A stretch of DNA of 63,378 nucleotides, filler included, from Pelomyxa schiedti (Eukaryota; Protista; Evosea): the NCBI GenBank assembly GCA_020536535.1. It is 10 parts of 10 records of this genome, joined end to end, with 100 filler letters (N's around TTAATTAATTAA, not from the genome) between each part and the next. Parts side by side here need not be neighbours in the genome. Positions count along the whole stretch, not along the records: positions 27,474 to 34,714 come from JAHLWZ010001366.1; 9 more parts are not named here. The stretch is one strand, 5' to 3'. Position 1 is the first letter of the stretch; each line of letters opens with the position of its first letter. Below the pieces are notes generated by a model that was given only the letters and a program-made list of their open reading frames with translations, did no database searches and was not told where the DNA came from. Positions 27,474 to 34,714 of this stretch are shown piece by piece. The position numbers and the translations under genes are program-made.

Positions 27474-30130
27474 ACCTGTATTGGTGTCCCTCAATTGCCT
27501 TTGCAATTGTGCAACTTGTGACTCCAAGTCTTTGATCTGCATGGAACGACTGAGATTGTTTGTGTTAGTGGTTGGTTGTTTTGTTTATGTTTATTTGTTT
27601 GAGTTGTTTTAAACTGAGATGAAACAGAGATGTGGTGCTGCAGCAGTGGCTTCTGGGTTGCCAAGTGTGATCGAACCTCTTCTGCAATGATTTCTGCATC
27701 TCCCACTACAATTCCAAGGCTGCAAAGCTGCTGAACAGTGTAACTGGCCAGTGTTCTTCCCCGGAGTTTTGCTGATCTGATGATGTTGAGGGAGTCATTG
27801 TCCAGCCCATGAGATCCAAGCCACACACACACCTGATCCACGTTGGCTGTTGAAAGGCAAAACACTGATTGTTGTGGTGCTGATGCTTTTGTTTCCAAGC
27901 CGTAATTAAGCAAACTTTGTTGCTGTGGTGGTGTTGGTGTGATTGTGCACTCTGTGGAGGAGTTTGTTGGAGGGTGTGGCAATTCTGCACACAGTTGGTG
28001 TGTCCCTTTTGTAGATGTGTTCCCCTGTGAATTTGCTGTAGATCGGTGGTCATTTGGCGGTGGTTTGGGTGGCAAATTGGTTGGCTTTGGAGTTTCAATT
28101 TTGGTGGGTGAACGTGTCTGCAAAGAAGAATCTGCACTTAATGGTGGTGTGCCCTTGCCATTTTTGAAAGCCATGGCAATGGTAACGTAAAACGCTTCCA
28201 TGATGTCAAGGAACTCATCCCACACCTCTTGGCACTTGTATGTCCTGTCTCCCAAACACAATTCCCCATTGTCCAGTGCTGGCAGCCACCCCAGCCCCAA
28301 CTCCTCAAAGTTCAACGAGTGGCGCACGATCGGGGCACCCCTGGCCCCAAGCATCTCGCTGATCAGGGGCAGGTCGCGATCAGACACCTTTCTGCGTGTG
28401 GGTGTGATGTAGTAGTACACTGGTGCAGTTGCCAGTGGCAAGGCCTTGTTGAGAGTGTGAACGCAGAATGCCATGAACCAAGCGGGGGCCCCTTGACTGG
28501 ACCTGCCAGAAGGCATGGGGAAGTCCCCACCAAGCACGCCCAGCTGCCTGGGGCAGCCCTCTTGGCTGGGCATCAGCAATGCAGCTACCTCACAGAACAC
28601 CTTTAGGATTGCCGCTCCCGTCTCAGCACCAGACAGTGCGTCAACCGCCAAAATGGCGGGCACGGCGGCGGCAATTAGGCCGTCACTAGACTGGACTTCC
28701 ATTGCAGGAGCACCTGGTGCTGTAACTATAATTAAGAGCAGGGGTGCTTCGGTGCGGCCCTGACCCAGCTTCTCCAATTCATCAGGTAAGGGGTCCTCGT
28801 CTGCAGTGCCTCCAGTGGTGGTAACACAGATGAACAAGTCGAAGCTGCCAGGTGGTGGGACCGTCGGTGGTGACGACGGTGGGCATGGGGAAGAGGGAGA
28901 GGGAGAGGGAGAAGGGGCACGAGGCGGCGGGAGGACTACGTGCCTGAAAACCGATTCAACGCCGCAGGCGCGGAGGAGGAGTTCCACCAGGAGGGAATAT
29001 GGGGCGACGTGGGGTTGGAACACAATGCAGCAGTGTTTATGATGCAGCGGTGTTCCTTTCGCAGCAACAGAGTTTTTAGGTGTGAAATCTATGGATGGGT
29101 TAAAAGAAGAATCTGCACTTAATGGTGGAGTGCCGTTACTATTTTTGAAAGCCATGGCAATGGTCACGAAAAACGCCTCAATGATGTCAAGGAACTCATC
29201 TCGCACATCTTCGTACTTGTATGTCGTGTCTTCCAAATACAATTCCCCATTGTCCAGTGCTGGCAGCCACCCCAGCCCCAACTCCTCAAAGTTCACCGAG
29301 TGGCGCACGATCGGGGCACCCCTGGCCCCAAGCATCTCGCTGATCAGGGGCAGGTTGCGATCAGACACCTTTCTGCGTGTGGGTGTGATGTAGTAGTACA
29401 CTGGTTCATCTGCAGTTGCACCATCTCTGGCCAGCAACAAGGCCTTGTTGAGAGTGTGAACGCAGAATGCCATGAACCAAGGGGGGACCCCTTGCAAGGC
29501 CCGGCCACAGGGCATGGGGAAGTAGTCACCAGGCACACTCAGCTGCCTGGGGCAGCCCTCTGGGCTTGGCAGCAGCAATTCAGCTATTTCGGAGAACCCC
29601 TTGAGGGTAACTGCTTCCATCTCAGCGCCAGCATCAACCGCCGAAACGGCGGGCATAAAGGAAGATAATACAGTGTCGAACCTGAGCTCCATCACGGAAG
29701 CGCCTGGTGCTACGAAAATAAAGAGGTGGTGTCTCATAGACATCAAATCGCCCAAATCGTCGTCGTCATTCACGGTGGTGACGCAGATGTGAAAGTCAAA
29801 GCTGTCCGCTGAGACCTTCAACGGCGACGATGGTGGGCATGGGGAAGGGGAGGGAGAGGCAGAGGCAGAGGCAGAGGGAGAGGGAGGAGGGGCACAAGGC
29901 AGGGGGAGGACTACGTGCCTGAAAACCGAGGTAACGCCGCAGGCGCGGAGGAGGAGCTCCACCAGGAGCGAGTACGGGGCAAGTTGGGGTCGGAAAGAGA
30001 GGCAGCAGCGGCTGTTGGGCGAGAGCCTGGTGTATGCCTGAGATGTGTACCGGGCCTCACGGATCGTGGGTCCTTCGTTGTCGCCCATTTGCTTGGCCGC
30101 TCGGGTCGTGGATCCTTGGTTGTTGCCCAT
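27474..30130 (-). CDS. Protein with two tandem ~300-aa repeats, a SAM domain and a coiled coil (3' truncated)
   Basis: Long ORF 27491..30130. Repeat units at ~29106-30008 and ~28124-29033. SAM-like VDQVCVWLGSHGL...LRGRTL...LCSLGIVVGDA. A probable intron then leads to QIKDLESQVAQLQRQLRD and the gene continues past the contig end. Confidence 0.75.
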
Positions 30131-30299
30131 TTGGTTTTTTCTTTGAGGTACCTTATCAAAGCACCAAGAGATGTGGGATCAAAAATAACAGGGAGAAACA
30201 AAGATATAATTACGCCCAACAGAGGGCGCTATTCATCGTGTGGCCCCAATCGTCATGAACCCAAACAAAGTTTTTTCTTCCAGGAAATCAAACAAAACA

Positions 30300-31161
30300 A
30301 TGTCAGCAGCGACACTCCCGCCGGTTTGGTGTCTGCGTTTGTCCCGATTCTTGTATCCAAGTCTCAATTCCACAGCAGTGTGCACCTTCTGAGGCAGAAC
30401 GCGATGTCATTAAAACACTGACTGCCACTCATCCAATGAAAGCTGGGGAGATTTGGTTCCTCATCTCATTAAGATGGTTCACTTGCTGGAAAATTTACGT
30501 TTCATACTATTGCTCTCCCTCGAGCTCATCTGGTTGCGGTGCCGTATGTTCTTTGCCCCATATTACAAAAATGATTCATATAATTCATGTTCTTTGAAGG
30601 GGTTGTTTGAACACTCTAGTTAGGCCCCCAGACCAGGACCGATTTCGAACAGTGATCTCCTTGAGGAAGATGGTGAGCTCAAATATTCTGTGTCGGAGAT
30701 GACACACTATGAGGTGGTCAGCGGTGTTGTGTGGAATACACTGAAGGGATGGTACTCTGGTGGGCCTGACATCCCTCGTCCTGTGATTTCCTTCCCTGCT
30801 CTGTACGGAAATGTTCGTCTCTCGGTGGAGCTGCAGCCACTGAGACTGCACATTGCCAAATCATCTGATACAACAGCTTCTGTGTTGGCATACTTCAGCA
30901 GAATTGACACTGTTGGTCATCTTAAGGTAGAGACCATTTTCAAGCAGAAGTACAATTATAATTCACTCACACCAGAAAACAATGTGTGAGAGAATGGGAT
31001 TGGAGCCAGACAACATCCACGTGTGGGACTACCACAGCGGCATTTGGCTCAAGGAACTTCATGATCAACAAACTCTGCACTCTGAACAGATTCTTCACAA
31101 CCAAACGGTTATTCTTGATAATATGCTTCCAATAATGGACAAAAAGAAGTTTAATGGTTGA
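30300..31161 (+). CDS. Stand-alone DUSP + ubiquitin-like domain protein (USP4/11/15 N-terminal module, no catalytic domain)
   Basis: A four-exon model with phase-0 GT-AG introns gives MSAATLPP|QCAPSEAERDVIKTL...GEIWFLISLRWFTCWKIY...|APRPGPISNSDLL...YEVVSGVVWNTLKGWYSGGPDIPRPVI...VELQPLRL...FSRIDTVGHLK|KTMCERM...IHVWDYHSG...QILHNQTVILD...NG*. Confidence 0.8.
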
Positions 31162-31443
31162 CTAGGTTATGCTGGATGAAAAAAAAGATGATGGGTTTTG
31201 GCCAAGCCGCAGGAGATACTACTACCCATAGGTTTGTGGTTCAGGAGCTAAATAAATAATGCCCCACCCGAAAAATCGATAAATCGCTTTCTCAGGTCAT
31301 AAGTGCCAGCTGCCGGTAGATCTGACAACAATTAAATCGCTGGTCCCAAGACTTTGAAAATGCCCGCACTAATGTGCTGGTTGTGCAGGGTACCGTGTAC
31401 AAAAAAAAATTGTTCTTTTCCACCATTAAACGAACAACAGGCC

Positions 31444-34400
31444 TTAACTTTGTTCACAGTTTTTTCTGTCGAAAATCCTGAGGAGCTGAGTCATTGTGGG
31501 ACGGGCGTTGGGATCGCGAACCCAGCAATTCACCACGATGGTCATGGCCCAACTGGGTAGTTTGGGTGCCGGTGGTGATTTTGGAAGTTGTGGGAGTATC
31601 TTGCCGAGTGCCAGTTCTCCTGCAACGCGCATGTCGATCATTTGAGCCTGCCCATTGAAAAACCGGAAATATGTGAAATCAAGGTGGCTGAAGGGCGAAT
31701 TTATGGGATCCATCAGCCTGAAAACAGCCATTGCTTTATTTATTTTTGTGTTGGTTAGGGCTGTTGCTGCACAAAAAGGTATTTACCAAAGCTCCAAACA
31801 TCAGCCTTTGTGTCAGACTTTTCATGATTGAAATCTTCGGGCGAATATACTTCCAACAAGGCGCATCTCCGAGTCTGTGCTGCTCCGGAATAAAGAACTT
31901 GAGACAGCCCAAAATCAGCAATCTGGTATCAGCTAGTGAGCAATATCGAACAACAGTAAAAAGTGGAACCTTTGCCCAAGGGCCGGGGCTGGATTCATCC
32001 AAGGAGCAAATAAAAATGTTTCCTGTGAAGCATTACTCTCTATAAAATTAAGGAAGGAATAATAGAACCTGTGTGGAGGTCACCGTGAACAATGGGAGGT
32101 TTCCGGGTGTGCAAAAATTCCAGGCCCTGGGCCACATCTTTCAAGATCTTCTTCCTCATGCTCATTGGAAGGACTTGGTCCAAGAATCGGGTGGTGTTTT
32201 CCCCTTTTTCAAGACACACCAGCACCAAGTCGTTCAAGTTCGGTTTCTCGATTTTAGTGTCTCCAAGAAGTTTTATGACACTCGGTGGAATGATGGGACA
32301 AATAAGCTCCATCACCAAGTACAGGTTCGGGGAAAGACAAGCACCATAGAACTTGACAATATTTGGATGCGCGGAAACTGCGTTCAGAAGTGTTGTCTCA
32401 AAGATGAACGCTGCAATGGCTTGGGGTGTGACCACCTCCTCCAATGGTTGTTTTACAGCCACGGGTTTGCCCTGATATGTTGCCCTCAGCACTTGCCCGA
32501 AACCACCTCTTCCCAATGGTTGCTGGGAGGATATCTCGAGTTCTGCAGGAGCAATCACAGGCAAGTGCTCGAGGAGGATATCTGGTGCAATTTCTGTCAG
32601 CTCCACTTCAACACTTTCTGTCTTGTCAGCTTGGCAGAGAAGATACTTCGTTCCTGATTTTGCCGTTTCAAGGACTGTTTTTTCGGGGAAACATGTTGTG
32701 CTTGGTGGCAGGCACACAACACTATGTACAGGCTGTTGTGTCGGACCAGAACGCAGGAATTGAAGCAAGCAATGAGAGCAAGGAAAAGAGGTATCCAATC
32801 CATTTAATAAATCATTGTAGGAATACTCCATGAATTGCTTGATCAAAGTCATCACGTGGAGTATCAAGCTCTTCCTTTTCCACAGTGGTGTTTCTTCTTT
32901 GGTGGTGATATTCGGTGCTGACCCTTGGGGTGAATTCGCTGGCTCCTCAATTGTGGTTTGCATGCAAATGTTGATTGCATGGTTTTTGTCTTTGTCCGTT
33001 GAATGTTGCATGACCTCGTGTGTCATAAGCAGTTTCTGCTTTATGACGGACGAAGAAGCTGAATCTTGGATACTGAGATTTTCAATGATGAGACCTTCAT
33101 TCCATGCCAACAGAGAGACTGTTTCTGGAATTCCAAGCACCATCACCATCAACCTTGGGAAAAACCCAATTGGTAGAAAGTGGAACCTGAGAACTCTCCC
33201 GCTCATGACAACCTTGGTACCTGTCCCTCCTGCGATCCAAAATGAGGCTGCTTTTGCACTTTCCTCAGAAGAGCAATGCGTGAGGTCTGGAAGAAGGGAG
33301 GGAGCTACTAGGCGCCCGTCAGACATGGTGAACAGGATTTCAAAAGTCTGCAATAGCTCAAGAAGGGTGGCATGCTGTTCGGGGGGAAATTCAGCAAAAA
33401 GCTGAGGGATATTCCTCCGGAGCACAAAACCATTTGTGACCCAGCCGGTTGTTCGTATTCTGACCACTGATGTCATCACCTTGGAGAGGTAAGCTGGTTT
33501 CAGCACAATCAAGTCACAAAGTGCCATCCCAGTTTTCCTCCTCAGGAAAGCTGAGTCTGACTTAGGTGAAGATTGCCCCATCAGAGTGCTGCACACTTTA
33601 TTGTGGTGCCTGAAATGTATGATGCTCCCTGCGTCCAACAGGAAGTCAGAACACATGTCAATTTCTCCTTGATCAATAACTTCGCTCTGACCAACACCCT
33701 TTGACTTCGCAATTGCAACATAGTCACTCCAAATAAGCGTATCGTCTGGCATGGCTGTAAGGTGCTTGTGCAAGTGAACCCAGTTTGATGATACAGTAAT
33801 CTGACGGGTATTTGCGATTTCCTCCAATTTGTCTGAAACTCGCTCCACAGCACCCTTTACACATATTGTTTCTGTTTCATCCCCTTTTTCGATCAGTGCA
33901 ATACCATCTCCAGTGGCCACACTCAATGCAAAAACACCGCAAAACTTACTGGAATAAGCTTGATCTCTCATTATGGCCCGCAAAGTAAGGCAGGCAAGCA
34001 AGGTCCCAGTTTTGTCAAGGTGCGTTCCAACAAGAACAATACGAACCTTCTCTTGCCAGAATGACATATTTATCAGATCCACCCAGTACTTGATTTTTGG
34101 TGGAAGTATCACATAATCACCATTCCAGTCAACAAGTGATAAGTCGAAAAGTAACAAGAACACAGAGTTGCTGCACAAGAAGAACTGATGTGATGGGTAA
34201 AGCACATCTTGACCTCCTGCCCAATTTTGTGTCACTCAATAAATTAAAAAAAAGGGGGAAAATGAGAGGTGGGGCAAACACACCCAAATCCCAGGCAACC
34301 CATGTGTGTTCACTGCGGCTGCTCAACTTGAATGGTGGAGGGATAGAAACTCCATCAGTGGACTTGTTTTTTTTCACACTGGTTGTGTTCCTGTTCTTCC

Positions 34401-34714
34401 TCAGGCACCTCAGCAATGTTGTTTTCCCCACACCACCATCACCCACCAGAAGAAGCTTGTGACTCTTCCACTCAACAGGCTCACCACTGTACACGGCGAC
34501 CGGATTCTTTGTGTCCAGTAGATTATTGCTGAGGAGCTGGGTCATTGTGGGACGGGCACGTGGGTCGCGGACCCAGCAGTTGACCACGATGGTCTTGGCC
34601 CAACTGGGAAGTTCACGTGCCGGCGGCGATTTTGGCAATTGTGGGAGTATCTTGCCGAGCCCCAGATCCCGCGCAATGTCTGTGGGTCTCATGATAGCCT
34701 GCCGGTTGTAAACC
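31444..34714 (-). CDS. Roco protein: kinase (partial) - Roc GTPase - COR - kinase (5' truncated)
   Basis: ORF 34129..34692 runs from a kinase C-lobe (CWVRDPRARPTMTQLL) straight into Roc (KLLLVGDGGVGKTTLL, AWDLG|GQDVLYPSHQFF). COR follows (FLPIGFFPRLMV), then a kinase: GRGGFGQV, VAVK, HGDLHTG|N, IADFG, KADVWSFG, CWVRDPNARPTM. Confidence 0.9.

Follow-up and report, generated by a model that had tools for sequence, protein, structure and literature searches.

A Pelomyxa schiedti Roco gene that probably encodes two Roc-COR-kinase modules in one chain

In Roco proteins, the nucleotide state of the Roc domain is relayed through the COR domain to a kinase, and the described members of the family pair through COR. 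For Roco proteins including LRRK2 (Parkinson's disease), GTP turnover, COR pairing, and kinase output are thought to be linked, with the details of the coupling still debated (PMC6337361). A 2019 review recognizes three layouts, namely leucine-rich repeat (LRR)-Roc-COR, LRR-Roc-COR-kinase with extra domains, and a DAPK type, each with one Roc-COR per chain (PMC6337361). Here we analyze a Roco gene in a 63,378-nucleotide (nt) stretch of Pelomyxa schiedti DNA (the window; assembly GCA_020536535.1), in which positions 27474-34714 are the whole 7241-nt contig JAHLWZ010001366.1 (the window contig). The source organism, P. schiedti, is an amoeba of the Archamoebae (Amoebozoa) that is free-living and anaerobic, and the contig is not of human origin. 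The window gene shares the order Roc, COR, TKL-type kinase with LRRK2, LRRK1, and Dictyostelium Roco4, but unlike LRRK2-type genes it appears, together with a second contig labeled L001, to encode two Roc-COR-kinase units in one reading frame. We read it as the 3′ two-thirds of a two-module Roco gene whose first module lies mostly on L001, and we put the probability of this reading at roughly 0.78. Judging from the family, each module would be an LRRK2-type unit running from a Roc GTPase through COR to a TKL-type kinase, and the product would combine two GTPase switches and two kinases in a single chain. Below, L001-L007 denote other contigs or loci of P. schiedti, and P-numbers denote retrieved proteins.

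The GenBank model of the window gene, P0001, is a protein of 976 amino acids (aa) named 'leucinerich repeat kinase' that starts at an ATG at 34692. On the minus strand, translation from the contig edge stays open for 143 codons (34713..34285) with neither a stop nor an intron, passing from VYNRQAIMRPTDIARDLGLGKILPQLPKSPPARELPSWAKTIVVNCWVRDPRARPTMTQLL (the end of a kinase C-lobe) through SNNLLDTKNPVA to VYSGEPVEWKSHKLLLVGDGGVGKTTLL (the Roc P-loop). The first 61 of these codons encode the C-lobe end, …CWVRDPRARPTMTQLL, and are all of the upstream kinase that the window contig holds, the remainder being lost at the contig end. Reading of the DNA together with a script check gave five exons separated by four GT-AG introns of 67, 46, 47, and 53 nt, and the exon junctions all match P0001. 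The 67-nt intron lies in Roc, the other three split the second kinase, and the stop is at 31444-31446. Within the window contig, about 2.7 kb of coding sequence runs free of frameshifts and stops. An earlier interpretation of this DNA, made without database searches (the sequence-only reading), had claimed that a kinase C-lobe runs in frame and without an intron into Roc, that a second kinase follows COR, and that the two C-lobes are highly similar in DNA. The 143 open codons confirm the first of these claims, and a Pfam match plus the exons leading to the stop at 31444 bear out the second. The third is seen as a direct repeat (31478-31661 versus 34529-34712) of 79% identity over 184 nt, far beyond chance, with a start-to-start spacing of 3051 and a shared reading frame. 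At the protein level, the upstream C-lobe tail (34531..34713) is 80-85% identical to paralogue C-lobes. The features of the gene, in the order of transcription, are as follows.

34531..34713, minus strand: end of the upstream (first) kinase C-lobe, last 61 codons; open translation and 79% DNA repeat of 31478-31661
34495..34530, minus strand: fusion junction and linker of 12 codons, SNNLLDTKNPVA, remnant of the last LRR; from the junction DNA alignment and comparison of kinase 3′ ends
34284..34494, minus strand: rest of exon A, start of the second-module Roc through WDLG of switch II; from Pfam Roc and motifs
34420-34443, minus strand: P-loop GDGGVGKT, in exon A
34217..34283, minus strand: 67-nt GT-AG intron in switch II (WDLG/GQDV); matches P0001, with the same exon end in L004
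32069..34216, minus strand: exon B, a single open frame of 715 codons with the Roc remainder, COR, and the second-kinase N-lobe to HGDLHTG
34014-34028, minus strand: GTHLD of Roc, in exon B
About 33990-32530, minus strand: COR, in exon B
About 32528-32069, minus strand: second-kinase N-lobe, with VAVK at 32448-32462 and HGDLHT at 32070-32087
32023..32068, minus strand: 46-nt GT-AG intron in the catalytic loop (HGDLHTG/N); matches P0001
31970..32022, minus strand: exon C, NIFICSLDESSPGPWAK; its translation is a substring of P0001
31923..31969, minus strand: 47-nt GT-AG intron; script check
31787..31922, minus strand: exon D, IADFGLS ... DVWSF, with DFG at 31908-31919 and the activation segment; translation within P0001
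31734..31786, minus strand: 53-nt GT-AG intron; script check
31444..31733, minus strand: exon E, second-kinase C-lobe ending …RPTMTQLLRIFDRKNCEQS, with the stop at 31444-31446; open reading frame (ORF), translation within P0001

Pfam searches of the window ORFs matched Roc, COR-A, and protein kinase. Roc (PF08477) scored 47.1 bits in P0001 (cut-off 27), COR-A (PF16095) scored 53.5 bits on the window ORF (cut-off 35.3) and 52.4 bits in P0001, and the kinase was matched by PK_Tyr_Ser-Thr at 54.4 bits on the exon B ORF and in P0001 by Pkinase and PK_Tyr_Ser-Thr at 126 and 125 bits. COR-B (PF25497) gave no Pfam match in the window protein at E up to 0.001; the family is above its cut-off (31.2 versus 27 bits) in a paralogue, P0153, with which the window protein aligns along that whole region. 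The window gene thus has what defines a Roco protein, a Roc with nucleotide-binding motifs and a COR directly C-terminal to it, and it also has the LRRK-type kinase C-terminal of COR. Among solved structures, the best matches were constructs of human LRRK2 comprising Roc, COR, kinase, and WD40, with E about 1e-24 over Roc, and, with E about 1e-22, the kinase of Dictyostelium Roco4. No LRRs beyond the 12-residue relic precede the second-module Roc. For the first module on L001, repeats resembling LxxLxLxxNxL can be seen by eye; Pfam gave no LRR family for its protein, P0002, at E<=0.001. The window gene departs from the described layouts in the number of units per chain, which is two in the window contig plus L001 and two again in P0153. 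A DAPK-like reading was ruled out: Pfam found no Ank, death, or calmodulin-related family in P0001, P0002, or P0153, and the upstream kinase is a Roco-type paralogue. P0001 also removes as an intron 36 codons, EYSYNDLLNGLDTSFPCSHCLLQFLRSGPTQQPVHS, at 32721-32828 on the minus strand, though the frame stays open there. Paralogues keep these codons as coding (SFPCxHCLL motif in P0002 and P0003), and the intron call is probably false.

The rest of the first module is found on L001, a 3633-nt contig bearing P0002 with an LRR-like region, Roc, COR, and kinase. In a SPAdes graph, adjacent edges share an overlap of exactly k. The 121 nt at the end of L001 and the first 121 nt of the window contig on its minus strand (34594-34714) are 100% identical, and the final P. 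schiedti assembly was made in the single-cell mode of SPAdes 3.11.1 with a maximum k of 121 (PMC8887013). Because the overlap equals the final k of 121, the two contigs are read as neighbors in the assembly graph, and this graph overlap is the basis on which we take them as probably contiguous in the genome. L001 supplies the remainder of the last kinase exon in an unchanged frame, together with the whole first kinase, COR, Roc, and LRR-like region, and this first module is free of stops and frameshifts. The sequence-only reading had predicted an upstream Roc-COR, and P0002, linked to the window contig by the 121-nt overlap, bears this prediction out. The whole locus would then, with good probability, run in the order N-terminal region with LRR-like stretch, Roc, COR, kinase, linker, Roc, COR, kinase, stop. 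All searches were run with single exons or GenBank models. At its end (L001 3513-3633), the P0002 model overlooks the final intron and therefore closes out of frame with the peptide YHETHRHCAGSGARQDTPTIAKIAAGT, which corresponds to the window contig's first bases in the wrong frame. Read in the correct frame, these bases give a normal C-lobe that continues into the window contig.

A second two-module gene is present in the same genome. P0153, also named 'leucinerich repeat kinase' in GenBank, is a 2315-aa protein from contig JAHLWZ010000388.1 (50 kb; L006) and was found via a short-query match to P0006, which lies on the same 50-kb contig. The gene is complete, with called genes on either side, and its layout is Roc-COR-kinase-Roc-COR-kinase, with two Pfam matches each for the Roc, COR-A, and kinase families. 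Its first kinase runs in frame into the second Roc: …RPTMSQILSMYLVENPQDTIPSRSRAEKWNTLKQSVMYSGEPVAWKRHKLLVVGDG. Since P0153 sits on a 50-kb contig, the two-module layout is not attributable to the shortness of the window contig. P0153 and the window gene share both this layout and the breakpoint between modules, and their DNA is about 73-88% identical along the module. The conventional paralogues L002, L003, and P0154 stop directly after the kinase and have no second Roc.

These two sets of observations bear on the possibility that the upstream C-lobe is the leftover last exon of a dead kinase, which would make the gene a remnant-Roc-COR-kinase roughly as modeled in P0001 and the identity with L001 a repeat. 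Such remnants do occur, as the same genome holds the isolated C-lobe remnant P0006; the graph branches at the shared 121-mer, and 61 kinase codons are what is visible in the window contig. Yet the 121 nt are identical to L001 while other C-lobe copies were seen at <=90%, so that a very recent second copy breaking exactly at the 121-mer would be needed, and L001 holds the upstream rest of the same exon with the frame unchanged. In P0153, a full kinase-Roc fusion that breaks at the same place lies on a single 50-kb contig. Furthermore, from the junction to the P-loop exon A contains no in-frame ATG, and an independent second unit would need to start from an ATG inside the remnant. We consider a dead-kinase remnant unlikely.

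Comparison of the junction with conventional genes indicates how the two modules may have been joined. Conventional kinases end in …TQILSMDW(S)-stop, as in P0154, P0006, L002, and the second module of P0153, and the conventional region ahead of Roc consists of the last LRR plus a linker, …KFVNLMENPLDTIPSRFRAEKWDTMKQFVMY…. Junction DNA was aligned for the window gene and P0153 with the pre-Roc regions of P0154, P0153 module 1, and L001. Both junctions follow kinase sequence to CTCAGCA(TG), about three codons short of the usual stop, and then enter last-repeat sequence (ATCTGxTGG…GGACACAA). The window gene has lost about 48 nt more of the repeat and linker than P0153 and has 12 codons left, and in residues of last repeat plus linker P0153 keeps 27 and the window gene 12. 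One ancestral in-frame fusion would be the simplest reading of the shared breakpoint. In such an event, the coding end of one LRR-Roc-COR-kinase unit would have been fused in frame to the last LRR of a second unit, which would thereby have lost its own start, its N-terminal region, and nearly all of its repeats. The same scar would be expected from a tandem duplication reaching from the last repeat to the kinase end or from a deletion between neighboring genes. When the junction sequences were inspected by eye for microhomology behind a recurrent fusion, none that would give the observed junction was found. In the product, the second unit would lack repeats of its own and be tethered by about 26 residues, counted from the end of the kinase 1 C-lobe to the first Roc strand.

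Single-cell whole-genome amplification makes chimeras, and the junction at 34495-34530 could in principle be an artefact, either of this kind or a misjoin of two tandem Roco genes. Single cells were the source of the DNA, which was amplified with GenomiPhi and assembled by SPAdes in single-cell mode (PMC8887013), and the family contains many similar paralogues. However, the junction sequence is not repeated in the window contig or at the other loci, which leaves a k-mer misjoin without a pivot, and the junction keeps the reading frame and coincides exactly with domain borders, with constraint on both sides of it. The same breakpoint in P0153, at only about 85% DNA identity, points to an old and diverged feature. 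An artefactual junction therefore seems very improbable.

A maximum-likelihood tree of 13 modules, covering the P-loop region to DFG, contains a fully supported five-module clade, within which the L001 module stands alone. The two modules of P0153 pair with each other (100/100), whereas the window module pairs with the single-module P0154 (100/99), its closest relative at 76% protein identity. Either module bodies were exchanged after the fusion or the fusion occurred more than once at the same spot, and under a single fusion the module bodies must later have been shuffled between paralogues by recombination or gene conversion. The first 77 Roc codons (34284-34494) differ from L001 (about 745-980) at a synonymous divergence (dS) of 0.085, compared with 0.61 for exon B, and DNA identity between the window contig and P0154 is a mosaic of 90% in Roc, 84% in COR, and 73% in the kinase. 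These two patterns make exchange among paralogues plausible, and the low-dS Roc tract suggests gene conversion between this gene's own two modules. The tree, in which the window module is nearest to P0154 and not to L001, ruled out a simple recent duplication inside the window gene. The sequence-only reading had proposed an internal tandem duplication; the repeated-module outcome it foresaw is found in L001 and P0153, but the module tree shows it to be an oversimplified history of the window gene.

Several observations weigh against a two-module window gene or against a single origin for it. The tree pattern is not that expected of an old two-module gene copied whole; with the modules of P0153 as sisters and the window module beside P0154, a single origin needs later conversion, and otherwise two fusions are needed. 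The upstream module is on a separate contig, and the assembler halted at the 121-mer common to both contigs; in a de Bruijn graph, such a halt implies that another path touches that node. The assembly was scaffolded with RNA-seq pairs, yet L001 and the window contig were left apart (PMC8887013). The origin of the DNA in amplified single cells, described above, counts on the same side. No transcriptome-derived protein was retrieved, as word searches with exon B and P0007 gave only GenBank proteins for P. schiedti. A word search with exon A matched P0006 only, a search that covers proteins of 79-250 aa and misses longer junction-spanning ORFs.

The coding state of the two modules argues in favor of the two-module gene. 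In both, Roc retains the P-loop, WDLGGQ, and GTHLD, and the kinase retains the VAVK/VVVK lysine, the alpha-C glutamate (IFETTLL), the catalytic Asp and Asn, and DFG. By the Nei-Gojobori method, the ratio of nonsynonymous to synonymous divergence (dN/dS) of window exon B against four paralogous modules is 0.30-0.35 at dS 0.47-0.73, and the kinase N-lobe alone gives about 0.2. For the upstream C-lobe tail the ratio is 0.26-0.48, a weak estimate from 46-61 codons. Taken as sequence constraint, these values speak for both units keeping their coding function without decay. They also bear on whether the locus could be real but inert, as a fused pseudogene or as a gene from which one module is made through internal starts or alternative splicing. 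In favor of this, the gene family is big and changing and contains both remnants and segmental copies, RNA-based scaffolding left the two contigs unjoined, and a dN/dS of 0.3-0.4 in Roc-COR is moderate constraint only. Against this, neither the window contig, over about 2.7 kb of coding sequence, nor the first module of L001 has a stop or frameshift, the GTPase and kinase motifs named above are kept in both modules, and the splice sites are intact; a dS of 0.5-0.7 without disabling changes is unexpected for a pseudogene. We regard an inert locus as having very little chance of being correct.

The catalytic loop of the second kinase, HGDLHTGN, emerges when the 46-nt intron is removed. The HRD arginine is replaced by Gly and the catalytic-loop Lys by His. 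The sequence-only reading had called this loop atypical, and the motif is indeed real and lacks the HRD arginine; it is, however, not specific to this gene. H-x-D-L-H-x-G-N or a close variant (for example, HRDLHAGN, HSDLHAGN, and HNDLHSGN) occurs in 21 kinase domains among the retrieved proteins, and all 11 whose source was looked up are from P. schiedti. At the position of the catalytic-loop His, the remaining retrieved relatives carry Arg (66) or Lys (45). The HGDLHTGN-type loop is a conserved trait of the Pelomyxa Roco group rather than a peculiarity of the window gene, and its conservation across the group argues for an active site that may be unusual but works.

In comparison with LRRK-type proteins, the locus keeps an LRR-like stretch ahead of the first Roc (on L001). 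Its Roc has THLD in place of NKxD, as do the other P. schiedti Roco paralogues. Unlike LRRK2-type proteins, it has no WD40 or other domain past the kinase (conventional paralogues likewise stop at the kinase end), its second unit has a 12-residue relic in place of its own repeats, and its catalytic loop reads HGDLHTGN instead of HRDLK/RxxN. The presence of a kinase upstream of Roc-COR in one chain is reminiscent of DAPK1. In contrast to DAPK1, the kinase upstream is closely paralogous to the Roco kinase downstream and is not of the calmodulin-regulated kind, and it adjoins Roc through 12 residues, with no ankyrin, death, or calmodulin-binding segments found in P0001, P0002, or P0153. A different likeness is to the Chlorobium tepidum CtRoco homodimer, which brings together two Roc-COR units, as would a two-module chain if its units pair. 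CtRoco does so with separate chains that associate reversibly, whereas the units here would be covalently linked with a kinase between them.

To place the layout among other proteins, phmmer was run with P0001 against 1.84 billion cluster representatives, which gave 227 matches at E up to 1e-30, and domains were counted locally for the best 150. No other protein among the best 150 of 227 repeats Roc-COR-kinase, a result that is only suggestive as P0153 itself was hidden in a cluster. The sequence-only reading had asked for a search for the kinase-Roc-COR-kinase order, and the outcome is mixed, with P0153 found in the same genome and no further example among these 150 representatives. The ten closest representatives that were looked up are P. 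schiedti paralogues save one chytrid multi-kinase protein. Full-text literature searches turned up nothing on Pelomyxa Roco proteins or on two Roc-COR units per chain, and "two Roc domains" there refers to the two chains of a dimer. The sequences are public in GenBank under automatic names, and the architecture seems to be undescribed. Among the distant matches, P0029, P0082, and P0111 lack Roc and carry four or five consecutive kinase domains; one of these proteins comes from the chytrid Polyrhizophydium stewartii.

The two COR domains might pair within the chain as a built-in dimer, a possibility raised by the sequence-only reading, or they might pair between chains to give larger assemblies, both of which are speculative. 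By analogy with the described dimers, the two Roc-COR units of one chain could pair through COR and make a permanently dimerized single-chain Roco protein, although we consider this doubtful. If it were true, an intramolecular rearrangement would take the place of the GTP-driven monomer-dimer cycle of ordinary Roco proteins, the first kinase would occupy the position against the second unit in which LRRs normally lie, and the protein would amount to a naturally occurring tethered dimer of the LRRK2 core. Pairing of the units would thus offer a ready-made tethered dimer in which to study the coupling of GTPase and kinase. More generally, the locus would show a large and fast-changing amoeba gene family making new layouts by in-frame fusion of neighboring units. 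Unfortunately, the practical weight of the system is limited, as P. schiedti is not in pure culture and its assembly is fragmentary.

The family to which the window gene belongs is a large lineage-specific expansion of Roco kinases in P. schiedti (P0007-P0021, P0028, P0073, P0153, and P0154), and nearly all of the looked-up best matches in the 1.84-billion-protein search are P. schiedti's own paralogues. Two further loci illustrate the state of this family. P0006 (L006 6571-7062) is an isolated last kinase exon that no N-lobe, COR, or Roc precedes. It carries the annotation of a 107-aa hypothetical protein, has an 811-aa gene on one side and a DUSP gene on the other, and is a relic of a rearranged Roco gene. 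At L003 7794-13593, P0004 (N-terminal region, LRR, Roc, and COR; 1182 aa) is followed 17 nt later by a 480-aa kinase gene, and the two look like a single conventional Roco gene that was split by annotation.

The remainder of the window contig contains two other genes. An 879-codon ORF at 27491-30130 on the minus strand, modeled in GenBank as 737 aa, starts with MGNNQGS, a possible N-myristoylation start. It contains two tandem copies of an approximately 980-nt unit that are 83-94% identical (families D1, D2, D4, and D5), and its one Pfam signal was a SAM match at the C-terminus that stayed below threshold (E 0.013). The Roco gene is followed downstream by a convergent plus-strand gene with a DUSP domain (about 30300-31161), and this DUSP flank is 84-91% identical in DNA to the DUSP flank beside P0006 on the 50-kb contig. 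A DUSP gene also follows the Roco gene P0007. In at least three paralogous loci (the window, L006 7167-8061, and L007 16098-16902), a small DUSP-domain gene stands convergent to and right after the Roco gene. Blocks of a Roco gene plus a DUSP gene seem to have been copied as units.

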